DNA from: Lepidodermella squamata
Taxonomy: Eukaryota > Animalia > Gastrotricha
Assembly: GCA_047495785.1 (NCBI GenBank)
Contig: JBLDXI010000031.1
Span: 1,178,001-1,242,000, forward strand
Reading direction: 5' to 3'
Length of the DNA stretch: 64,000 bases
The translations under genes were made by a program, and so were the position numbers. Positions 27,246-63,500 of this stretch are shown piece after piece. The notes under the pieces are model-generated. The model saw only the letters and a program-made list of their open reading frames with translations. It had not been told where the DNA came from and made no database searches. Positions within the stretch are counted from its first letter, which is position 1, and every line of letters starts with the position of its first letter.

Positions 27246-27689
27246 TGCACCTCAACGCGCGTAGAATGGAAGGGGAACTTGATATGAATGCATTTAAACG
27301 ACAATATCAGTTGTTTTTTATCCGATATTATTCGAATATCGTGTTTCTTCTTAATTTTTTAGGCGGAAAATGCCTGCTGATCCAACAAAGGCGATAGTGC
27401 ACTGGCTATATTTTACTCACTCATTCGACTAATTCGAGAAACGCTTTCGTTCATTTTCCTTCGAATATGGTAGACTGATGATTTACACATGCCCAACATT
27501 TATCTGTCATTCTCGGTTTGAATACCCAGCCCATATGCGCCCATAAAAATGAATCATTGAGCACTGAAGTTTCCTTATCGTGGTGAGAGGCCGTGGGATT
27601 TTTGCATTTTACACCCCTTGTTATCTAAAGTAGCAGAGGATTTCCAGCCTACTTGATGATGTCAATTACCAGTTTGCTCAAACAAAAAC

Positions 27690-29229
27690 ATGCAGCCATC
27701 TACTGAAGAGGAGGTTGATGAAACTGAACAACAACCTCAAAAATGTGAAGGCAAACGGTGTTTGATATGCCTGCCCATCTACTGGCTGTACAAAGCCTTC
27801 GTTAACATCGTCCTCCACTCGATGCGATGGAACAAACGCTCAACGCCACAGTACTTCTACTTCGCTTTCTGCCTGATTCAAGTTTTCGCCGCTGGCTTAC
27901 TTATCGCAGCTCCAATCGCCGTACCGGATGAGAGAGATTTCGATTCGGAATCTTCCAAGCTTTACCGCTACAATCTGTATCCATTCTACTCCGGCGATTA
28001 TCCGATTGCAGTCCCCTTATTCATTGTCTATGTTGCTGCCGCTCTTTGCGGGTGGCTTTTCATTTTCTCGCTGCCAAGCTTTGCGGTGACATCAATGGCT
28101 CTGCTTCATTCATTCATATTTATTTGCTATTGGATATATCTCTCTGTATTTGTTGGCGAAATCATTTATTACAGAATGGAAGAGTTGACGCGCCACCTGA
28201 ATTTAACCAGCTACCTGGAGTCCGACTCAAGCGTCAAGGAGGCTTTATTGAGCGATTTAATATCCAGCTACAAAGACACGGATGTTGTTTCAACATTTTA
28301 TGGCAATTCTTTCACCCTCAACGCAATCATGGTCAAATACGACTGTTGTGGCATTGATGGCCCTGAAGATTTCCAGTTGAACAGAGGATCTTGGGACAAG
28401 TTTTATATAGGCCTGGCCCAGCCAGCTGTGGTTCCAATCGCCTGTTGCAAGTCTACTAGTTTCAGTCATCCTCTTAAATCGCCAGATCCTGAATACTCTT
28501 TCAACTCTTTCTGATACAAATTGCTTGTTAAAAGGCGAGGGAATACGGAGCAAAGGATGCTTCAACGTGATAATGAATGAAATGGCTCATATTGACAGAA
28601 TTGAGACGCACGGCGCTGTTTACGGCTCATTAGCTTTTTGTGGCGTGATTTTGTTGATCATCGGTTATTGTGTCAACTTGAACCTATCGATCAAGTATCA
28701 CTGGCTGATTTTCCATGTTGGAGGCGATACTAAACTTTTTTGTTTCCTGCATTGCAAATGCTGTGCTTGTTGCAATAATTTTGGTCTATGCTGCTGTGGG
28801 CCGAGCCTCAGACGGAAATTTAACCGAGTTACTTTGTACCACAAAACTAGGGTCGAAGCTGCTGAGAATATTCTCAAGTCCCAACAAATGCGGCCTGGCA
28901 GGGAAGGCTTAGCCGGGGGTGGCATGTATTTCGCATCTAAACCGCCATCGACCGAGGACAAAGCAAGGCATATAAAACGAGGCGATGGTACAACAATGCT
29001 GAAGGCTACGGTTGCATTGGGACGAGTTAAAAGATTGCCGCCTAAAGGTGTAACAGAATTGTCGGAGTTTGGCGAGGACTACAATGCGAGGTTTGCGACT
29101 ACTTGCGATGAAATGCGGGAGTATTTGAAGCGGGTCAAGCACGATTCAGTTTGGCTGCCTCAACCACATCCAGAGTTCATTGTTTACGATGCCACCCAAA
29201 TTTCTAGAATTAGGCCAGTCAAATACTGA
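27690..29229 (+). CDS. Tetraspanin-like 4-TM protein fused to a C-terminal Gig2/PARP-like ADP-ribosyltransferase domain; intronless, with a +1 frame break near 28411-28514
   Basis: ORF1 carries three TMs and the EC2 motifs YDCCGIDG and VPIACC. ORF2 (+1 frame) continues with TNC...KGC, TM4 and a Cys cluster, then LYHKT...GGGMYFA...ATVALGRVK...HDSVW...EFIVYD (H-Y-E ART signature). Confidence 0.7.
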
Positions 29230-29265
29230 CAGATAATTGTAGATTTCGCGAGAAATAAAGCTTTA

Positions 29266-30867
29266 ATGTTGAGTGGTGAACATGCTTTTGGTTCCATGTA
29301 CGACACGAGGGTAAATCTCCCTCCTCAGAAACGACTCAGTAGATTACGAAGTTATGTTAGTATTGCAAACAAGGCGCAGGCATCTCACATCTGTGTTATA
29401 AGCTATGTAGACGATGAAACATCTGCGCTCTTTTATTCATACCAATGCTATGATATTTTAGCTTTTGGATCGATTAGCTTACCATTTCAACCTTATAGCA
29501 TGAGAGCCTTTTACAACAATATTTCCAATGCTTGTCAATTTTGCGGTTTTGCTAGCAACCAATGCTGCTGTTACCAGCAGGTACAAATCAGCGAAGCGTT
29601 CAGAGCAGGATCTCCATATTTTTACAGTGTTCTTCCGACAGCGAGTTTGTTCCCTCATTACTCAGCTTCATCGCCTCCGATGACTCCAGAACCGCCACCA
29701 CTACTGCTGCCACCCCAATTCTTGTTTCAAGCTCCTCCACGCGTGGAAAACTTGCTATCATCACGTGTTATCAACGATGGTTTGAATGAGAATCAATTGG
29801 CAGCAATTTTACACGAAATTGCGTTTGACGCTGAGATGCTAGCAGAAGCCGAAATGGTGGCATCTCGCCTAGAGAGTTCAATAAATTCGAATTTGCAGCC
29901 TCAAAAAGGATGCCTAGCTTCTCTGTTCGGTTCAAAAGTTTCGTCTTTCGCACTTCGATCCTCTGCGGATCTCGACTTGGTTCTTCTTTTTGATAACGAC
30001 GAGCAAGTTTTTGTTAAACGATACGCTACTCCTGAGGAGGAAGTTGAGTCTTTGCAATTGAAAGGCGTTTCAAAGACGAAAATTCTTCAACGAATCGATC
30101 TAGTTGCTTCGATTTTACAAAACTCTTCGGAATTTGTTAATGTCACGCCTGTCAGAGGCGCCAGAATCCCGATTGTCCGGTGTTACCATCGACCTACATC
30201 ATTGAATATTGATATTTCAATCGATCAATTGCTGGGTATCAATAATAGCCACTTGCTCAAGTTGTATGCAGCTTACGACCCCAGAATTCGCCCCCTTGTA
30301 CTTATCGTCCGCCAGTGGGCTGGAATCCAGGAAATATGCCCGCTGATTGGTTTCTTTTCGAGCTACGCCTTGACATGGCTGGTTTTATTTTTCCTACAAA
30401 CAAGAAATCCACCGGTTTGTCCGAGTGTGGAAGAATTGTCCATATTTGAGCTGGAATGGAAGATTTATGGATGGCCTGCTGGCTACCCTCGAGATCTGAA
30501 AAGATGGCCCGCTACGAGAAACGCTGAATCTCTCTCGGAGCTTGTCAGATCTTTCTTCACCTTTTTCGCGACTTTCCCGTTTCGGGACGAAGTTATCATG
30601 CTTCGGAATGCTTCACGATTACCGGTTCAACTCTTCTATCAGCAGTTCTCAAAAATTCGAAAGTTGGACAGCTTTTCGATTTCGGAGGTAACCATTCAAG
30701 ATCCGATTGAGCTGAACCGCAATATAACGCGGCTAATTTCTCTGGAACATGCGAAAATCATTCAGGCGACATTTGCGTCAGCCGCTGCCATTTTTTACTC
30801 ATGCGAAACTGATGATGATTCGTTCAAGTTTTTGTTTAGCAAGCACAATCTTTCCACTATTTACTAA
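29266..30867 (+). CDS. Non-canonical poly(A)/poly(U) polymerase (Cid1/TUT1/MTPAP-like nucleotidyltransferase), intronless; probable start ATG 29500
   Basis: LFGS...ADLDL (GS + DxD), ARIPIV, third Asp in NIDISI, SSYAL, and a PAP-associated domain ESLSELVRSFFTFF...IQDPIELNRNIT. Confidence 0.88.
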   Translation: MLSGEHAFGSMYDTRVNLPPQKRLSRLRSYVSIANKAQASHICVISYVDDETSALFYSYQCYDILAFGSISLPFQPYSMRAFYNNISNACQFCGFASNQCCCYQQVQISEAFRAGSPYFYSVLPTASLFPHYSASSPPMTPEPPPLLLPPQFLFQAPPRVENLLSSRVINDGLNENQLAAILHEIAFDAEMLAEAEMVASRLESSINSNLQPQKGCLASLFGSKVSSFALRSSADLDLVLLFDNDEQVFVKRYATPEEEVESLQLKGVSKTKILQRIDLVASILQNSSEFVNVTPVRGARIPIVRCYHRPTSLNIDISIDQLLGINNSHLLKLYAAYDPRIRPLVLIVRQWAGIQEICPLIGFFSSYALTWLVLFFLQTRNPPVCPSVEELSIFELEWKIYGWPAGYPRDLKRWPATRNAESLSELVRSFFTFFATFPFRDEVIMLRNASRLPVQLFYQQFSKIRKLDSFSISEVTIQDPIELNRNITRLISLEHAKIIQATFASAAAIFYSCETDDDSFKFLFSKHNLSTIY

Positions 30868-34151: not shown

Positions 34152-36941
34152 TTAAGTTAGGGTGATATCGCCAACCTCGTCGTTCGTAAATTCTAACCAG
34201 CCGCGCGGGCTAGTTTCGCAAGATGTGATGTTTGAGTCGGCTAAGTGGCGAATGTTCCAAGCCGGCGAATGCTGTTGCATGATGTTCCGGCCGAAGTCGT
34301 CAAAGCTCAATTGCCAGACGTATTTTAGGTATTCAGCCATCACACCACCTGAACGGAGACATCTTTCGCCGTAGCTCACGAGCCGGTCGTGGAAGACGTC
34401 TTCGATAGACTTGACACCCGACAGGTAAAGTACTCCGAACGAGTCCGCGTCGTATGGTAAGTCTAGTGCCGCACGAAGGCTATTGGCTTGCATCTCGAAT
34501 AAGCGGTTTCGAGACGACCTAGGTAAGCAAGCCCATGCTGGTGAGCTGTATGTCATGATGCTTTGGGATAGCGCATTGTGAAACATAATGCCGAGCTTGG
34601 TTGGCAAGACTTTTCGAGCCATAATACCGCGTAACATGCCGGCTCTCGGCCTGGTTTTGGATGAAATTGCCGACAACTGGGTGTCCCAGCTGAGTCGCGG
34701 GTTGAGGTGAAGACCGAGGTACTTCAGTTGCTGAACCTGTTTGATTTTTCGCGGGCCTAACCTAAGTTGAATCGAGGGTAAGGAATTATAAAAACCAAAA
34801 ATCATTGTTTCGCATTTTTCCGGGTGCAGTATTAGGCGCCAGCGGGCGCACCATTTGACAGTGTTGTCCAGCTGAAGCTGCAGTCGACGCGAGCAGTCTA
34901 AAAGCGATTTGCCGTACGCCCAGTTGAGGGCATCATCTGCATAGGTGCCGTTTGCAACTCGACGCTTACCGTCGTCGGGTTCAGCCTTTGTAGGCTGCAT
35001 ATCGGCAGTAAAAAAGATAAACAACAAGGGACTCAGAGGTGACCCTTGAGGTACACCGCAGTGAATTTCGTGTTCGTCACTGAGTTCACCTTCCACTTTC
35101 AGCTTGAAGCAGCGGCCGCGCAGAAAGTCAGCCACCCATCTGACGATGGGCTCAGGCACACCAGCTTCTATTAATTTATACAGAAGTCCGTTGTGCCACA
35201 CAACGTCAAACGCGCTCTTAAAGTCGAGAGCTACTGCGATGAGTTTCCAGTGCCGGGCCAGGGCGATAGCTACGTCATTGACGAGCCTAAAACTGGGGTC
35301 AGTGGCACATTTTCCGCGCCAGAAACCGAACTGATGTTCAGGAAGAAGGCCATTGCTGGTGAGATAATCAAATAAAACTTCCGTCACGAGCGACTCGAGA
35401 CATTTTCCGATAGCAGGAAGAAGGGCGACCGGTCTGTAGGACTCAGCCAGCTCAGGGTCTTTCCCCTCTTTGTAGACGGGGACGACTATTGCGATTTTCC
35501 ATGCCCTGGGCAAGTACCCGCAGTTCAGGCTAAGTTCGAACAGTCGTTTGAGGTGAGAGTTCAAGCTTGGGCCGCCGTTTTTCAACAGCACGTTAGACAC
35601 TTCGTCGTGACCTGGTGCTTTAAAATTCTTCAGTTTTTTAAGCAGACGTTTCAGGGAAGATTTCGGAAGTCGGACTCGAAACTTATCGGGTACCGTAACC
35701 GGCTTGGTGGCCGGGTTTTCATCAATCTCTTCGTCGACTTTCTGCCAAAATTCACGGTCGGCAGTGGCATTCGAGGTTGTCGCTGGCGCAGCTACAACTT
35801 TAGCGAACGTTTTTGCGAGCAGGTCGGCTTTCGCCTTGCTCCCCGTCACCGCTATGCCGTTCCCCGTCTTCAGGCTGACGACGCTGCGTTTCCGCTGTTT
35901 CCTCCTCAGAAGTTTCGAGGCTGCTGCCCAGGCGGGTCGTGAGTTGTTGTTATTGAAGTTTTCCGCCATAGCTTTGAGACAGCGGATGCAGTCTTTTCTG
36001 TTTTCTTCGCCAATTAGATTAGCGATCTCCTTAGTAATCGCATTCAGCGCAGTTTTAACGTACGCACTGTTGGTCGAGTCATGCAGCTTTTGCAGCTTAT
36101 TTCGCTTTTGTAGAGCTGTCGCAATCGGCTTTGTCAGCGTCCATGTTTGGATCTCGCTCGCCTTAGCTCGCGGTATTGACTCCGATGCCGCCTTTTTTAT
36201 CGATTCGACGATAGCTTCTAGGTAAATATCGATAGCACTTGGCGTGTCACCTGGTTTCGGGATCACCGGTTCAGCAAGCTCGCGAAGCCAATAGGTCAGC
36301 CTTTTTCGAAATTTAGACCAATTTGCGTGGTTGAATTTATACCGTTCTTCGTTAGAGTCCGACTTCGGGCGATTTGGTGTGCTAGTAACATTTAGTTCGA
36401 TCCTGATAGCCGCATGGTCGCTGCCGTACTTCGCGTGAACAGTTGGATTCGCGTTCATGAGCGCGCGTCCCTCAGAGTTTGCCAGCCAAATGTCGATTAG
36501 GCGTCCCACCTTGTTCGGCGAGAAATGGGTAGGCTCACCGTTGCTAAGTAGATGGTGGCCTTCTGCTTCGAGCCAGCATGCCAGAGCGGTGCCCGCGGCG
36601 TTGTTGCCTTTGCCGCCGGTTAGAAGACGAGTGTGCCAGGCGTTTAGGTCACCTCCGAAAATCGCTGGTGTGTTGTCGTTATTGTATAACAATCCACCTA
36701 AAGTGCTCTCCAAAAATGTTGTGTCGAGCTCCTCGCTTGGTGAGCGGTAGCCAGTAGCTAAAATGATCTCTTTGCCAGATTTGTCGAGTACTCGCAAGGC
36801 GAGCCATTCACTAGCTTCAGTAAAATAAGAATACATCTCGCCCAGGACGCGGATATTGTTTTTGACTAAAATGGCGACACCGCCATGACTATTTTCATCA
36901 GTTTTATTAATTTCATCTTTCGAGCGGTCAAGTCTAAACAT
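34152..36941 (-). CDS. LINE ORF2 endonuclease/reverse transcriptase (N-terminally truncated)
   Basis: 929-aa ORF with APE and RT motifs; no RNase H was recognised. Confidence 0.9.
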   Translation of the reverse strand: MFRLDRSKDEINKTDENSHGGVAILVKNNIRVLGEMYSYFTEASEWLALRVLDKSGKEIILATGYRSPSEELDTTFLESTLGGLLYNNDNTPAIFGGDLNAWHTRLLTGGKGNNAAGTALACWLEAEGHHLLSNGEPTHFSPNKVGRLIDIWLANSEGRALMNANPTVHAKYGSDHAAIRIELNVTSTPNRPKSDSNEERYKFNHANWSKFRKRLTYWLRELAEPVIPKPGDTPSAIDIYLEAIVESIKKAASESIPRAKASEIQTWTLTKPIATALQKRNKLQKLHDSTNSAYVKTALNAITKEIANLIGEENRKDCIRCLKAMAENFNNNNSRPAWAAASKLLRRKQRKRSVVSLKTGNGIAVTGSKAKADLLAKTFAKVVAAPATTSNATADREFWQKVDEEIDENPATKPVTVPDKFRVRLPKSSLKRLLKKLKNFKAPGHDEVSNVLLKNGGPSLNSHLKRLFELSLNCGYLPRAWKIAIVVPVYKEGKDPELAESYRPVALLPAIGKCLESLVTEVLFDYLTSNGLLPEHQFGFWRGKCATDPSFRLVNDVAIALARHWKLIAVALDFKSAFDVVWHNGLLYKLIEAGVPEPIVRWVADFLRGRCFKLKVEGELSDEHEIHCGVPQGSPLSPLLFIFFTADMQPTKAEPDDGKRRVANGTYADDALNWAYGKSLLDCSRRLQLQLDNTVKWCARWRLILHPEKCETMIFGFYNSLPSIQLRLGPRKIKQVQQLKYLGLHLNPRLSWDTQLSAISSKTRPRAGMLRGIMARKVLPTKLGIMFHNALSQSIMTYSSPAWACLPRSSRNRLFEMQANSLRAALDLPYDADSFGVLYLSGVKSIEDVFHDRLVSYGERCLRSGGVMAEYLKYVWQLSFDDFGRNIMQQHSPAWNIRHLADSNITSCETSPRGWLEFTNDEVGDITLT

Positions 36942-55630: not shown

Positions 55631-57357
55631 ATGCTGGATTCAGCTGTTCATCAAAGGCTGAAATTTTGGCCTATAGCAGTGCTAGCCCTGTTCACTCTTG
55701 GTTTGATTGCCAATTATGACAATTGGAGGCCCTTCAGCGAGCCATTCGCGTTAATTCCGGTTAAAGGCGGAGGACTTACGCCGTTTCAGCAGCAGATACT
55801 CCGTCAAATCTCAAGTTCAAAATTCAGTGAATTTTACGCCGGATTCTTCGCTGATTCAATTGCCAATTATGGCGACCAAAGTCGCTTTCATAACACGATC
55901 CTTCGACTAGTGGGCGGAAATTTCACGGCTGGCCATAGGAAGAAGCTAAGGATGGCTGTAATTGCAGGGTCTAATTCACACGGGAGGACTAGCTTGGTAA
56001 ATAATAACTGTTCCTTTAACCATTGAAGGCTGAAGATATTTTTACAGGCAGCGAACTACTTCGATCGAGTATGCGGATGGTTTTCTAAATCGTTAAAGCC
56101 GTTCAAGGTCGACGTCATCTGCGAAAATTGGTCAATGGGTGCTACTGGAAGGTAAGCTGCTCACGTTATACCAGCACAATTAATCCTCTCAATTTTTCAA
56201 GTTTACTGTATAAATTTTGCTTGGACGAGATGATTGATCTCAAGAAGCTGGACATCCTCTTCACGGAATTCGCCATCAATGATTCGCCTGAGACGCACGT
56301 GCGCATGGAAGACTACGCTCAGCTTATTGAGCACATTTGGAAAGTAAATCCGAACGTTCAAATCGTAAACTTGGAGCTCGATTTCGGATGGCGCCCACTT
56401 GGTATCAAGGCTAACAAATTTATGCATAACCTATGGCGGTGCCAGCTCTACTTCAAGCCTTCCTTCCACCGTAAGGTTGCGGAACGATACGACTTTGCTT
56501 CAATCAGAATGCACCACTTTTTCTGCGGACACGACTCGAGAAACGTCACTCTGAATTCAATGAGAGGTATTTTGAATTTTGAAGTCAAATAGGATAGGCA
56601 TTGTGAAGTTTGTACAGATGGCTACCTTTCCAAGTTGGACAACATCCATCCGGGTCCATTGGTCCACATAATGATTAGCGAGTTCTTGGTGGCTTACTTC
56701 AAGAGATCGATTAACCAGCTTCTGGAATCCGAAGTTCGGACTGTTATCCCCGCGCCATTGCTAGAAGTGGCGAAAACCGGCCCGTTCCATTCGCAATGCT
56801 TCCTATCTGTGACACCAGGCCACTGCAATTCAACAAATCATAAGCTGGAACAGGCTCTCATTCAAACGCCTCAACAAAACGTCACAACCATGCAACGCGA
56901 TGCTCTAAATGCCGTTCTGATATTGAAGGGCGTCAATTCAACCGCACAATTCATGTTTAACAACTTCACGAAGAACCACTTGGTAACAGGATTTCCGGCA
57001 ACTTACTGCCCAAAGTTTAACAAATGCTTCGAGCCAAGATTGGTGCTAGGACACAAGGGTGACCCAGCTGCCAAAAAGATGATAAAGATAACAGCGACGT
57101 ACACCTCAACAACCAGCGAAACATTCCACTCGGTCTTCAACTTGGACTTGGGCAGAAGGAGCAAGAACACAATTTACGAATATCCAGTGCTGGTTGGACC
57201 AAGAAAAGCTATTCCATGCTTTAGTAGAAACACCTCGGTGATTAACGATATTGAATCAGCGGCTGTGAAGTTTGAGCAACTGAGTTTGAGCAAAAAGCGT
57301 TTTCCCCTGTCATTGTTATCGATTGTGTTTGTCTTTGATTGCCCAGATTTGAAATAA
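55631..57357 (+). CDS. SGNH hydrolase-like protein, copy C (exons 55631-55996, 56048-56151, 56202-56566, 56618-57357)
   Basis: N-terminal TM, motifs RMAVIAGSNS, NWSMGATG, DILFTEFAIND and DNIHP, and a C-terminal VFVFDCP like the other copies. Confidence 0.8.
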
Positions 57358-57547
57358 AGCTATCAAATTCAGCATGATGCTTTCTTATTCTAATCATCCA
57401 AAAAACCCTTGAGATAAATTTGGAACCGTTATCATAGCAAGACAGATAAAGAACTCAGCAAGAGATAAGCTTGTGGCGAGAGACAGATCGTGAGCATTTG
57501 AACTTGTTTTCTCCACGTTTTGGTACTCAAAACAACAATTCTGCTGA

Positions 57548-60500
57548 ATGCTCGTATTTGTCTTCACAGCGTTATTTTTATTTGATCTGAGCCCAAAGAC
57601 TTTAGGCTCGTCAATCGATTTATGCCAATTCGATGATGATGCGACATCACGCTGTAAATTACAAAACGATGGCACGGTAAAATGGATAGTTGCTTCGGCA
57701 AACGATGCAATGAAAAGCAATGCAGGGAGGCGAAATCTGTTGCCTCGGGTAGACGCGAATAACTCCCCAGAGGGTTTCTACGTCTACCTAGATAGCGAAG
57801 ACAACAGTGAACCATTCCAACAGGCCTCTATAATCATGCCAGAACTGAAAACGACTGATAGCGTAAACTGCTTGAAGTTGAACTACATCTATTTCGGGAC
57901 ACAACTTCCGGAAATCAAATTGCTTCGCCACTGTGAAAACAGCGAATCGTCTATGCCTGAGCATAGCCTTGGCACTCATATTATGTGGAAACTAAACGGT
58001 CCAAGTCATATTTTATCGAATTCTGATCATATGTGGCGCGAAATCGATATACCATTGCATGATAATGCAATAGACGACTGTTGGCTTGAAATTGTCGCGA
58101 ATTCTAATTTTGCTGATGTTTCTTACGGTGGAGTGGCTTTTGACAATATCATAGCCACTAGTTGCCCTTGGGACCCAAAACAAGACATCTGTACGTTCCA
58201 AGAGCCATGTAACTTTTGGTCCTTCGACAATTCTGATTGGCGCATCGAAACTCCTGTATTTCTACAACAAGTTGAAGAAGATTTCACTTACCGATCATCT
58301 GAGGGGAAATTTCTCGCGATTTTGCCGAAAAGTGATGAAGACTGCAGTTTTTCCCAACTCTATGGCCCCAAAGTTGCGGACTTGCTTACTCCAGCCGTGT
58401 GCTTCAACTTTGCAGCTTACATTATCGTTGAAAGTGGCGCGGCAGATGTTAGCTTTTACCTTAGAATCGAAGGCGCGAATAATCGGACGGTTACAACTAT
58501 TTGGAAAGGTCGAATGCACGATGACGATTCGCATCAATGGCAACAGTTTTATGTTTACGCTGATATTTCAGATGCAATTGGCTTTGCCGATGCTCAATCT
58601 CTAGAGCAGTTTCAGATTGTACTCGAAGCTCGTTTATGCAACGGAAACGGTTTGGCCATTGATGACATAACGGCAGTGGTTAAATCATCGTCCGACTGCC
58701 GTTACATGAGTGATGATGACTTCGAAGGTAAATTCACATCGTGGCAATCCGATGGATCGATTAATATCGCTGTTTTCCCTACGGAGTAAGAATTACCAAT
58801 CTGATTGTCACTATGGCAGAGATTTTTATGTGTTTTTTCAGGAAAATTCAGGGAATGCATGAAGACCACACCTTCCTCCAATCAAACTCTCATGGCAGTG
58901 TTCTCCTAGCTCCTTTCTTTGAAGATGAAGAGTTTGGAACGATTCGAAGTCAGGTTTTGACCCCAACATACGCGCGATGTGTCTCCTTCTGGATTTACTC
59001 TTTTTCTATCGAAAATATGAGGCTCAAAGCCGTTATTACCGAATACGAGTCGTTGAGTGATACTGTTGCATATGAGCTGAATACTTCAATCCAAGTAACC
59101 GGCAACTGGATTTATGCGTCATTTTCCTACTTTTTCGAGAGATCCCATCAAATTTCAATCTACGCTGCTAATTTGGCGATCGATGATGTTAGTTTAACAG
59201 ATGGTCTTTGTGCGTGCCGTCCTGTTGGCGAGATTTCTAGATGTGTTGTGCCAAAGCTTGATAAAATTAACATCGAATCCCTTGGTAAAAATTTAAAATG
59301 AGTGTTCATCACAGTTTTACTATTGTTTTACTTGTAGGGAGCGAATTGGTATCATATTACGAAAGAGTCGGGCTATGCTTAAATCAAGTGGTATTGACAT
59401 ATCATGACAGCTCGATTCTCGAATGTGCCAGGCATTGCGATGTCTCGGAACTCCGTCGCGGAGACGAATGCTCTAGTTTCAGCTTTAACGCAGCAGATTC
59501 AACGTGTAACCTCCAGCTGAATTCATGCTCAAATAATTTGGAGCTGTCGGCTGATGTTAGAACTTTCGAGAAGAAAGAATTCCCGAATTATTTTCCAACG
59601 CTTGGTTACTGCGCAAACAAAGCCGCAGAGGTACTGATAGAAACGGATTCGAAAGCCTGCTCCGAAATTTGCGATTCGAACTCGAAATGCTCGTATTTTG
59701 AGTATAACACTGTAAGTGAAAATTGCTTCATCTACGATTCGTGCTCGTTATCTCCATCCAACATCAATCGGATGATGTATGAAAAAATACGTGAGTTTAT
59801 CTGAGATTAATGTTGAAATTCTGGCCTTAATCTTGATGATTATTTAGGGTTCCGTGGCTTCACCCACCATGCCGGGACGTGCGTTTTCGATCAAGGTAAC
59901 TTCCAACGACTTCCTGATATCACCCGGCGAGAAGTAAATGACTTGTGCACTGCTGATCCCAAATGCTCGGCTTTCATTTTCGATGAAACAAGAAAAAACT
60001 CGTTTCTTCTGCTTGGCGGGGAGTGCTCGGGCTTCGCAGATAATCTAGGCACTCATACTTACATTCGACTCAGCAATCCTCAGTACAGCTGCGATTTCGA
60101 AACGGCTTGCGATTACAAATTTTCAGCGGGAAAATTAGGCTTTCAAGTTCAACAGTCTTCTGATGGATTTATTCAAGGCGGCCCGAAAAGAGATGCTTCC
60201 TTGAACAAAGATTTTGAGGGAAGTTACGCGCTACTAACATACTCAGCCACAACAATCGGTCAAGATTCTTCGAACGTTGGGAGTGCCACCGTAACAAGTC
60301 CTTCAATTCAACCAGATTTTGCGAAGTGCTTATCTTTCCGCTATTTCCTATTCGGAACAAATGTTGGTGAGTTAGTTGTCGAATTCGAGGTCGACGAACA
60401 GATCCTGGAAGCTTCGAGGATATCAGGAACGAAAAGCAACGCTTGGCTAGAACAGCGACTCAATTTAGAAGCCATGAATTTCACCTCACAATACCGAATA

Positions 60501-63500
60501 GTATTTCGAGCCTTTTGGACAACTCATTTTCAGGGCGCCTTGGCAATTGATGATATCTCGGTTTCTTCGAATCCCTGTTCTAGAAGCCTGGATCTAGCCT
60601 GCAGGTTTGAAGGCTTCGACAACTGTGAGGTTAAAACCTCAGAACAGTTTGAAGTTATTAGAGCTGTCGATGCAGATCCAAGAGCTAGAGATCACACTTA
60701 TAACTCAGGTAATGGCCATGCTATAGTTGCCCAGTCTATAACTGTTGAAAACAGCGCAATATTCAGCGTTGAATACCATGCCAAATACGATCGATGTCTG
60801 ACTTTTTGGTACAGACTCAGTTCATTTGGCTGCATGCAACTTCGAGCCGGCTTAAAGACCAACAACTCTGAAATGCTTGAAGTCGTTTCACTCACCGCAG
60901 ATCCCTCTAATCGCTATGAATTCGTCCAGGGCCGAGTTCATCTACCTGGTTTGGAAGAAGATGAACGAGATGCAGAGTTATTTTTCAAGGTCGGCATTCT
61001 ATGCCCGGTTTCCAATGCCGAAGCGTGGCTGGATGATATCATCGTTCTTGAGCAAGGCTGCTCTAGAAAAGGATCGTGTAGTTTTGATTCAACCCTTTCT
61101 CACTGCGGTTTCGAATCAAAGGGTGACGAATTAATGCCGTTTTTATTTGGTTTGTCCAACGGCCCTTCGCCTATACCATCTCCTGAAATCGATAACACGC
61201 TGATGGACTCTCAAACAGGTGGTTTCGTATTTCTCGACCAACACAGCAGCGCCTTGCCTAAAATGGGTTACATAACTTCTCCTTGGCTTATCGCATTGAG
61301 CGACGTTACCACTGTGTCCTTTTTCTATGTGCTGAATGGACCCGATGGCGGATTGCTCAGAGTTGGCCTTCAACCTCAAGGGCACGAAATGCGTGATCTT
61401 TGGCAGTGGACTGTTAAAGATAGAACAACAACTTGGCAGTATGCCAGGTTTTCATTCGATTCATCTGATGTCGAGGCTTTCGAGCTAGTTTTTATTGGGA
61501 CAAGAGGGACAAACAGCTACGCAACTCTTGCTATCGATGATATCGTTATCATGCCCGGTGTTAGCGGAGCTTTCTACCCTCTCGGCTCTGATCCTGACCT
61601 ACCTTTGACTACAGACGCGCCTCCGTCGGGTACAACATTTCCAACTACGCCTTATCCTCCATTTCGTAGGCTTTGGAGTCAATTCTTGAATTGTTATTAA
61701 TAATTTGTTACTAGCTATCGATGGACTTTTGATCGATTGCGATTTCCAAGATTCTGTTTGTGATTTCTCAACGGATAAGAAATACGGCTTATCCTGGGTT
61801 TGCCCAAAGGATGGAACCTGCTCTGATCCTTACGGGCCATTCTTAGACCATACCACGGGAACAGGTTTAACTCAAAAGTATATTTGTTAACCTTATATAA
61901 TCCTGTTTCTATCTTTTAGTTCAAGGTCGTTACGTGTGGAGTGATGTTCAGTATACTGGATCGTTCTCAGTTAGGGCCTCAATCACTCAAAAATACTCTT
62001 CGCTGCAACCCGCCTGCCTAAGTTACTGGTACTTTGCGACGGGTGGGAACTTGCCTTCGATTAAAAGTGGCTACATGTCATCATCAACATCTCAAACCCC
62101 TTCTGATATCTTTCAAAGAACAAGACCACAAACATCATCTTGGACTTATGTAGAGCACTTCATTCCACCTTCTACGTCATATTTGATCCACATAACAGCG
62201 GAGCGTGGTCAGAAAGCTTATGGCGATGTTGCGTTTGACGATGTGAAACTGTGGAATGACAGCTGTCCGGCTCGTCCTAATGAATGCAGTTTCGACGCAG
62301 GCTACGCTGATCCTAACAAACCTTGCGGTATCAAGACCTCCGGAGATGCGTCTTGGAAGTTTGGTCAAAGCAGTCGCACAAACTACGACCACACTTTGCA
62401 AACAGCATCAGGAAGATATGCCTATGTTGACTCTAAATGGTCTGCGAGTTTTCAAAGCGCTAAATTGGCATTTCCTGTGGTGATGGATGGCAGGAATTCT
62501 AAAGCTTGCATCAGTTTTTGGTACCAGTTGAGTGGAACTAAACCTGGAGAATTGAAGCTTTACTACAACGATGAAGCCGCCGAGGAAAATTTTGTTGCCC
62601 AACTCTCCTCGTTTACATCCTGGGCCTTCGCAAAATCTGACGTCAAACTGCAAGGTAACCATCGAATCTCAAAAGCATCATAGCTGAGTTTTCGTTTTAG
62701 GATTTCTGCCCGCTAAATGGCTTGCTGTTTTCATTGCAACCTACAGTTACGATGGGAAAGTACCAACTAACCAAATGATCCATTTGGATGATATCAAAGT
62801 TACACCTGGGCCTTGCGAAACTGAAAGTAATATTGATAAAACTTCAATTTCTTGGCCTAATCGACTCTTCTACAGCAATCTGCACATTTGAAAATGGCCA
62901 ATGCAATTGGGAAAATGATGCAGATAATGTTGACTTTGATTGGCTGTTAGGAAATGGCGCAAATGGTGGCCCAGTTGATCTAGATCATACAGCCGAGTCA
63001 GCCGAGGGTCATTACATGTTCCTTCCGATGAAAAGACCCCTAATCAGAGGATCAAGGGCTAGGTACATTAACCTTACTCCCTACTCAAAGCCTAGCTGCT
63101 TGAGCTTTTACTACTACCTATCAGCAAGCTCATCTTCAACTTACAAAACAGCTCTAAGAGTCCTAGCAGTTACAGATAAAACCCAGCTTACTTTATGGCT
63201 GACATCATTAGATACAAATGGAACATGGGCCTTCGGCCAAGTCGCAATCGATAAGATGTCAGAGCCGTATGAAATTGCTTTTGAGTCATATTTTGACTCG
63301 GACCGTTACGATCCTGTAATTGCTATTGACGATGTAGATGTCACTTTCGACATTGCAAAGTGTAAGACCGCCCCATCTATGAATGAAGCTCCCGAACTCG
63401 GATCAGATTGGCTGACCTGTGATTTCAAAGAAGGAAACCTTTGCCTGTTGAAGCCTAGCAATGAATTCAAGGTTATAATCGATGCTCTTGATTCGAAGCC

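Follow-up and report, generated by a model that had tools for sequence, protein, structure and literature searches.

A stretch of 64,000 nucleotides from the gastrotrich Lepidodermella squamata, here called the window, contains at positions 27690-29229 of the forward strand a gene (the tetraspanin-ART gene) in which a tetraspanin-type membrane anchor is followed by a cysteine-rich linker and an ADP-ribosyltransferase (ART) domain with a His-Tyr-Glu (H-Y-E) triad. Judged from the sequence, this architecture is real, unusual and novel, and its function is only predicted. The literature was found to hold no mention of a tetraspanin joined to a PARP or ART domain, in agreement with an earlier note on this DNA, made from the letters alone, which knew of no described protein of this kind. 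In the window the gene is interrupted by a +1 change of reading frame inside the outer loop of the tetraspanin part. On balance, and with some reserve, the window allele is best regarded as still transcribed but frameshifted, a probably non-functional or decaying member of a rare gene family. The gene is single-copy in the 121-Mb, 151-contig assembly, and no intact second copy or paralog was found elsewhere in that assembly. All features of the gene described below lie on the plus strand.

The tetraspanin-like half

The first open reading frame (ORF1, 27690..28514) has 274 codons followed by TGA and encodes an N-terminal helix, the first three transmembrane (TM) helices and most of the large second extracellular loop (EC2). 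It matches the Pfam Tetraspanin profile (PF00335) over residues 55-258 with an E value of 3e-7 and 30.8 bits in this piece, which lacks TM4; the curated cut-off is 32.1 bits, and the locus scored 29.7 bits in a genome-wide six-frame search. Ordinary tetraspanin genes number in the dozens in the same genome, as found by profile search, and six intronless ones were aligned into a profile (A4). Comparison of A4 with ORF1 by hhalign gave a probability of 73.8% and an E value of 2.9e-5 over TM3 and EC2, pairing CCG with CCG and VPxSCC with the VPIACC of ORF1. The A4 hidden Markov model scored ORF1 at 18.2 bits, compared with a maximum of 5.8 bits in 300 loop shuffles. When both pieces of the gene were given, with an X at the break, the score rose by 4.9 to 23.1 bits and the alignment extended through KGC into TM4. 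Because the alignment carries on past the break with a higher score, the +1 segment is the natural continuation of the tetraspanin loop. The language-model neighbours of ORF1 in the Atlas are all tetraspanin clusters (0.88-0.89, with up to 191 of 256 features in common). The Pfam match, the A4 comparisons and these neighbours bear out the earlier proposal that the N-terminal half is tetraspanin-like. A word-based homolog search with ORF1 returned nothing, and a sequence search of solved structures gave no match for either half. A paralogous tetraspanin as recent donor of the loop was ruled out, the best match to ORF1 in its own genome having an E value of 0.012.

Hydropathy gives five hydrophobic segments, one more than the earlier note had counted. 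The additional segment (residues 24-42, 27759..27815) precedes the four tetraspanin-type ones, is followed by a basic RWNKR and is kept in the relatives described below. TM1 spans residues 60-78 (27867..27923), the Pfam match beginning at residue 55, and is separated by a first extracellular loop (EC1) of about 31 residues (27924-28016) from TM2 (residues 110-128, 28017..28073). TM3, supported by hydropathy and by the hhalign comparison, occupies residues 137-155 (28098..28154). EC2 follows at 28155..28617. It is a tetraspanin-type loop of about 155 residues with six cysteines, read in frame 0 to 28511 and in frame +1 from 28513. Its CCG (28344-28352) and P-I-A-C-C (28434-28448) lie in frame 0, while DTNC (28513-28524, with the Cys at 28522-24) and KGC (28552-28560, with GC at 28555-60) lie in frame +1. 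The spacing from CC to the next Cys is about twice that in the other tetraspanins of the genome. TM4 comprises residues 36-54 of the +1 part (28618..28674, by hydropathy) and is followed by a conserved LSIKYHW. Beside the additional segment, the sequence thus predicts a topology of four TM helices, EC1 being small and EC2 large.

The ADP-ribosyltransferase half

Beyond TM4 lies a juxtamembrane linker, CFLHCKCCACCNNFGLCCCG, with 9 Cys in 20 residues (28741..28800). The earlier note had pointed to this stretch, and it proves to be conserved: the relatives P0001, P0002, P0004 and P0030 are Cys-rich at the same place. The linker is a candidate palmitoylation cluster, and its position beside TM4 would fit such a modification.

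The remainder of the second frame is a domain of 143 residues with its stop codon (28798..29229; stop at 29227-29229), delimited by fold model, profile and alignment. The triad His lies in LYHKT (28834-28848), the Tyr in GMYFA (28921-28935) and the Glu in PEFIVY (29170-29187), all in frame +1. These motifs, like the CCG, PxxCC, C and GC of the outer loop and the Cys-rich linker, were all found where the earlier note had placed them. The Pfam PARP profile matches the tail with E values of 1e-4 to 6e-4 and 19.9-22.4 bits, below its cut-off of 26.7 bits. An exhaustive HMMER search with the ART query yielded 433 relatives. In an alignment of 92 sequences, H15 and Y44 never vary and at least 90% of the sequences have E126; all three residues are present in the window copy. 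The His-Tyr-Glu triad therefore appears complete at the level of the alignment, as distinct from a residue-by-residue check of the active site, and would fit a transferase that is active on itself or on neighbours near the membrane.

The AlphaFold2 (AF2) model of the 143-residue domain, calculated with the 92-sequence alignment, has a predicted local distance difference test score (pLDDT) of 86 and a predicted template modelling score (pTM) of 0.81. Foldseek related it to the ART domains of PARP4, PARP3, PARP1 and tankyrase with a probability of 1.00. With VIA-align it was superimposed on tankyrase-2 with a Z score of 11.1 and a root-mean-square deviation (rmsd) of 2.3 Å over 118 of the 143 residues, and an Atlas shape search led to PARP clusters with a TM-score of about 0.7 (0.72). 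On this model the C-terminal domain can confidently be assigned a minimal PARP-type ART fold. The earlier note's identification of a C-terminal H-Y-E ART is upheld both by the fold and by conservation of the triad.

The same note had called the domain Gig2-like, which holds only as a distant relation. The nearest link is a frog tandem "PARP catalytic domain-containing protein" (P0019), matched at an E value of 1e-10 with only 25% identity, and there was no named Gig2 among those ART matches whose names were checked. Of the 92 relatives, 58 match Pfam PARP (E 0.01 or better) and 33 match ART-PolyVal. The domain is better placed, as far as its matches indicate, in a broad class of small eukaryotic ARTs.

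A six-member family

Searches of billions of proteins gave a family of six sequences including the window copy. The other five, all proteins from metagenomes or run assemblies (P0001, P0002, P0004, P0030 and P0152), match the window copy in TM4, LSIKYHW, the Cys-rich linker and the ART domain, with E values from 2e-45 to 2e-17 and 33-50% identity over TM4, linker and ART. Further searches with P0001 and with the family alignment added P0152 alone. The N-terminal helix and TM1-3 are also present in P0001 (344 residues), P0004 (343 residues) and P0030, which are among the best matches to the ART query, and hhalign of their N-terminal part against ORF1 residues 35-144 gave a probability of 95% and an E value of 3e-8. 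P0030 ends at an intron, P0002 and P0152 are partial members, and the contig of P0001 offers no ATG in frame with it. The gene for P0004, on a 7.5-kb contig, is intact, starts with ATG and has no introns, and its product passes the Pfam PARP cut-off at 30.8 bits.

The earlier note would have given up its proposal had no fused homolog existed anywhere. Since the intact P0004, and P0001, join a multi-pass membrane anchor to the same ART, that is not the case. No tetraspanin loop is recognisable in these fused relatives: their loop between TM3 and TM4 has about 25-30 residues, as against about 155 in the window copy, and they show no loop CCG and no tetraspanin signal in profile comparison. Within the family of six, a recognisable tetraspanin loop appears to be a feature of the window copy only. 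An ancestral tetraspanin-ART fusion with loss of the loop in the relatives is favoured over gain of the loop in this lineage, because the exact insertion of a tetraspanin loop between TM3 and TM4 of an unrelated four-TM protein would be a large coincidence.

The same class of ART has also been joined to other anchors. P0084, P0126, P0130 and P0097 carry unrelated multi-TM anchors, none of them a tetraspanin, and a single TM helix precedes the ART in P0101 and possibly in P0002.

One relative is itself damaged. In the locus encoding P0152 (L021, 559-1270), comparison with L002 shows a frameshift by a 4-nucleotide tandem duplication, TGGATGGA. A second lesion, in the stretch from the Cys-rich linker to the ART domain, puts a nonsense codon in place of the conserved Lys of RLKFNN. 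Together with the frame break in the window, these lesions suggest that the family is prone to decay and apparently being lost.

The frame break

ORF1 ends at the TGA at 28512-14. From DTNC onwards the gene is read in the +1 frame, open from 28411 to 29229, and the change must fall between 28449 and 28521, a zone that includes both the TGA and a 9-nucleotide tandem repeat, ACTCTTTCA/ACTCTTTCT (28495-28512). This repeat abuts the stop and is a typical slippage context. As a consequence of the +1 break, ordinary translation would halt at the TGA and produce no fused protein. The joined protein of the earlier note is thus not one open frame: its halves lie in different frames, a point that the note does not mention.

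Contigs of two sequencing runs were compared with the window. Run X1, in which a loose end consists of the SMART cDNA oligo, is cDNA-type, and its coverage is confined to about 27668-29275. The DNA run X2 has contigs of up to 130 kb; it may be the sample behind the window assembly, so that X1 alone is certainly independent. Each run has a contig over 28436-28615 that is identical to the window and contains no joint. An assembly error as the cause of the break is ruled out by these spanning contigs. The X1 contig links the tetraspanin loop to the second frame in unspliced cDNA-type sequence, and the earlier note's idea of looking for transcripts that span from EC2 into the second part is borne out as far as this contig, which crosses the outer loop into the second frame. 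Two further candidates were rejected. An alternative genetic code is ruled out by several different stops in frame 0 beyond the TGA. A canonical short intron is likewise ruled out: among all phase-correct GT/GC-AG pairs there was none that preserved the six-Cys loop or resembled the local introns.

The break site reads UUC-UGA-U, the arrangement found at the +1 site of antizyme, and programmed +1 ribosomal frameshifting there would give a truncated three-TM product alongside the full tetraspanin-ART protein. Frame +1 takes up the tetraspanin-like DTNC...KGC...TM4 right at the stop, and a shift there would retain all six loop Cys; both frames are intact, and the break is common to the assembly and to contigs of the two further runs. 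Antizyme shifts by +1 at the codon before UGA, classically in UCC-UGA-U and with variants such as UUU-UGA and CCC-UGA, but UUC is absent from the listed shift codons (PMC1874602). The antizyme gene of this genome (L025:1177-1758, G000:C18) itself uses the classic UCC-UGA-U, between a short first frame and an ODC_AZ second frame. No stable fold was found in the downstream RNA that might act as a frameshift stimulator (z -0.75). The site therefore lacks the marks of an antizyme-type programmed frameshift, a known shift codon and a 3' stimulator. As the relatives lack the loop, there is no conservation of the site to compare, and the prior for cellular +1 shifts is very low. Frameshifting at this stop is considered very unlikely.

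Splicing would restore the frame if a weak intron from 28459 or 28465 to 28534 (76 or 70 nucleotides) were removed from some of the transcripts, giving a fused protein with a five-Cys loop. Among phase-correct GT-AG pairs, these two alone spare PxxCC and GC; they join ...ACCKSTS(FS) to EGIRSKGC..., a T-rich run, TTGCTTGTTAAAAG, lies at the acceptor, and in both runs a contig break falls at 28465. Since the DNA run shares this break, however, it points to a sequence variant and not to a splice. No joint was seen, and the cDNA-type contig retains the stretch at exon-like depth. Neither donor, GTTTCA or GTCATC, resembles the local GTAAGA, GTATTT and GTAAAA, the intron would be longer than the local ones of 52-57 nucleotides, and the Cys of DTNC would be deleted, leaving an odd number. 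Such an intron is highly improbable.

The two frames might instead yield two products, a truncated three-TM fragment and a single-pass anchored ART starting at the ATG at 28573 (MNEMAH...), made from an internal transcript or a trans-spliced mRNA. This ATG is in frame 15 codons upstream of TM4, relatives with a single TM helix and an ART are known (P0101, possibly P0002), and the genome has operon-like gene junctions, including the 36-nucleotide spacer at 29230-29265. Nevertheless, an out-of-frame ATG at 28557 comes first, neither a 5' loose end nor a leader was seen near 28535 in the contigs, and frame +1 upstream of the ATG at 28573 still reads as tetraspanin-like loop. Separate production of the two parts is very improbable.

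Haplotypes and the standing of the window allele

The favoured explanation is that the window carries a broken copy of what was once a single protein. The ancestral product would have been a tetraspanin-type membrane protein in which an additional N-terminal hydrophobic helix stood ahead of the four TM helices and the outer loop carried the six Cys of the CCG/PxxCC/GC pattern. Its tail, cytoplasmic by tetraspanin topology and hence where NAD+ is available, would have begun with the Cys-rich, probably palmitoylated stretch and ended with the minimal PARP-type H-Y-E ART of about 140 residues. Anchored by the tetraspanin part, the enzyme would sit in membrane microdomains on their cytosolic side, where NAD+ from the cytosol could serve the ART for ADP-ribosylation of itself or of neighbouring proteins close to the membrane. 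In the present allele, the +1 change in the outer loop would have split the tetraspanin part from TM4 and the ART.

A second, divergent haplotype differs from the window copy at 22 non-synonymous and 15 synonymous codons, giving an omega of roughly 0.46 from what is a partial list of the differences. This suggests that constraint is relaxed but not absent. A patch of EC1 at 27994-28008 is hypervariable, six consecutive codons differing between the haplotypes (GDYPIA versus DGFYVT). An immune role for the protein is speculation, to which this cluster of amino-acid differences gives the sole hint.

Several observations weigh against the view of the window allele as a dead or dying copy of a tetraspanin-ART gene. 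Both halves stay fully open, with 274 and 272 codons, and the gene is transcribed, as seen in the cDNA-type contigs of X1. The occurrence of the same break in the assembly and in contigs of X1 and X2 would also suit a gene that is bridged by recoding or has an intact second allele. At 28288-28298 the divergent haplotype has lost 2 nucleotides and, 10 nucleotides away, gained 2, so that the frame of ORF1 is preserved. The depth of X2 over 28472-28538 is that of one contig only; the other haplotype is therefore not aligned exactly at the break and may differ there. The Tetraspanin and PARP scores of the window copy are slightly under the Pfam curated cut-offs. As to the tetraspanin fold, the AF2 model of ORF1 reaches only a pLDDT of 60 and a pTM of 0.30, with EC2 below 50, and a fold search with this poor model returned only long-helix and coiled-coil noise with Z scores of 7 or less.

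In a rival view, the reference haplotype would be a null allele while the species keeps a working gene, with a continuous frame at 28466-28538 in the second haplotype and the fused protein made in most individuals. The contig paths fork just after 28465 in both X1 and X2, and the single-contig depth over 28472-28538 is about half the local depth of X2. Elsewhere the other haplotype preserves the frame, and the haplotype differences suggest an omega below 1. On the other side, the contigs never showed the sequence of the second haplotype at the break; the argument from depth is indirect, since contigs drop variants; and all three data sets contain the broken version. A working second allele of this kind is judged rather unlikely.

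A fused protein may nevertheless be produced, through a second allele that is intact or through recoding at UUC-UGA-U, and act as a receptor-like enzyme. Its variable outer loops would bind a partner or a pathogen ligand, and the ART on its palmitoylated tail would mark submembrane proteins. This proposal is tentative, and the balance of probability lies against it. The reading of the window allele as a frameshifted and probably decaying copy is retained.

Comparison with known proteins

The window copy shares with tetraspanins (PF00335; CD81, CD9 and the TSPAN family) the four TM helices, the short EC1, the large EC2, the CCG/PxxCC/GC pattern and the juxtamembrane Cys. It differs from them in the extra N-terminal helix, the wider CC-to-C spacing, the frame break inside EC2 and a cytoplasmic tail that, at about 190 residues and with an enzyme domain, takes the place of the short one usual in tetraspanins.

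Among membrane-bound ARTs the closest parallel is PARP16, which has one C-terminal TM helix, an N-terminal helical domain and H-Y-I rather than H-Y-E. Like PARP16, the predicted protein would hold a PARP-type ART at the cytosolic face of the membrane by a TM anchor. Unlike that of PARP16, its anchor is N-terminal, multi-pass and tetraspanin-like, and its ART is a pared-down core of 140 residues with a Glu. PARP16 is tail-anchored at the endoplasmic reticulum and ADP-ribosylates PERK and IRE1alpha (PMC8148056, PMC7695420).

The catalytic domains of tankyrase-2, PARP3, PARP4 and PARP1 resemble the window ART in fold (Z 10-11, rmsd 2.3-3.1 Å) and in the H-Y-E triad, and the ...PEFIVYD motif resembles the PARP strand that carries the catalytic Glu. 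Identity is only 18-24%, the window ART is about 60-70 residues shorter than that of tankyrase, and the helical regulatory, WGR, SAM and ankyrin parts of PARPs are absent from the window copy. Small H-Y-E/D cores comparable to the window ART are found in the Gig2-like vertebrate PARP-domain proteins and in the Tox-ART-HYD and ART-PolyVal clades. Gig2 has been grouped, alongside PARPs and the Tox-ART-HYD2/PolyVal clade, within a wide range of PARP-related ARTs (PMC5512222). Gig2 proteins differ in being soluble, often tandem and virus-induced in fish, with about 25% identity to the window ART.

Surroundings of the gene

The tetraspanin-ART gene is flanked on one side by an inositol-polyphosphate-kinase gene on the minus strand and on the other by a gene for a Cid1-like (terminal uridylyltransferase, TUTase-like) nucleotidyltransferase of 533 residues, a single frame at 29266-30867. 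The ATG of the TUTase gene lies 36 nucleotides past the tetraspanin-ART stop, and the spacer (29230-29265) contains AATAAA at 29254-59, giving an operon-like junction. The cDNA-type run X1 covers the tetraspanin-ART gene, yet has no coverage of 29276-29400, the first 125 nucleotides of the TUTase gene up to the end of the stretch compared. Further along the window are a LINE-type (long interspersed nuclear element) retrotransposon at 34152-36941 on the minus strand, with an intact-looking frame of 929 residues containing an Exo_endo_phos endonuclease and a reverse-transcriptase domain, and, at 56128-61700 on the plus strand, a series of exons or open frames for MAM-domain proteins. The introns of the latter measure 52-57 nucleotides, with GTA donors and T-rich (C/T)AG acceptors.

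Elsewhere in the genome the small-ART profile has a single other match, which is weak (E 0.002; G000:C24:1023778-1023987, L020) and lies within an open frame of 238 residues. Two tetraspanin matches with equal scores, L009 and L010, are on small contigs (G000:C84:70693-71376 and C99:28477-29160) and are probably uncollapsed haplotigs or a recent duplication. A pattern for the rotifer spliced leader had no match.

Implications

To our knowledge, tetraspanins are viewed purely as organisers of membrane microdomains, without enzymatic activity of their own, and intracellular PARP-type enzymes are nearly all soluble, PARP16 being the tail-anchored exception known to us. The frame break in the window and the lesions in a relative temper the functional importance of the window copy. 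Around it, however, a tiny, as yet unnamed family of six sequences has been defined that is open to expression and assay. If the fused protein is in fact made and active, the family would be a new membrane-anchored branch of the small ARTs and would contain the first tetraspanin with a catalytic tail. It would form a direct link between microdomain organisation and ADP-ribosylation, and thus a new coupling of membrane microdomains to NAD+ signalling.

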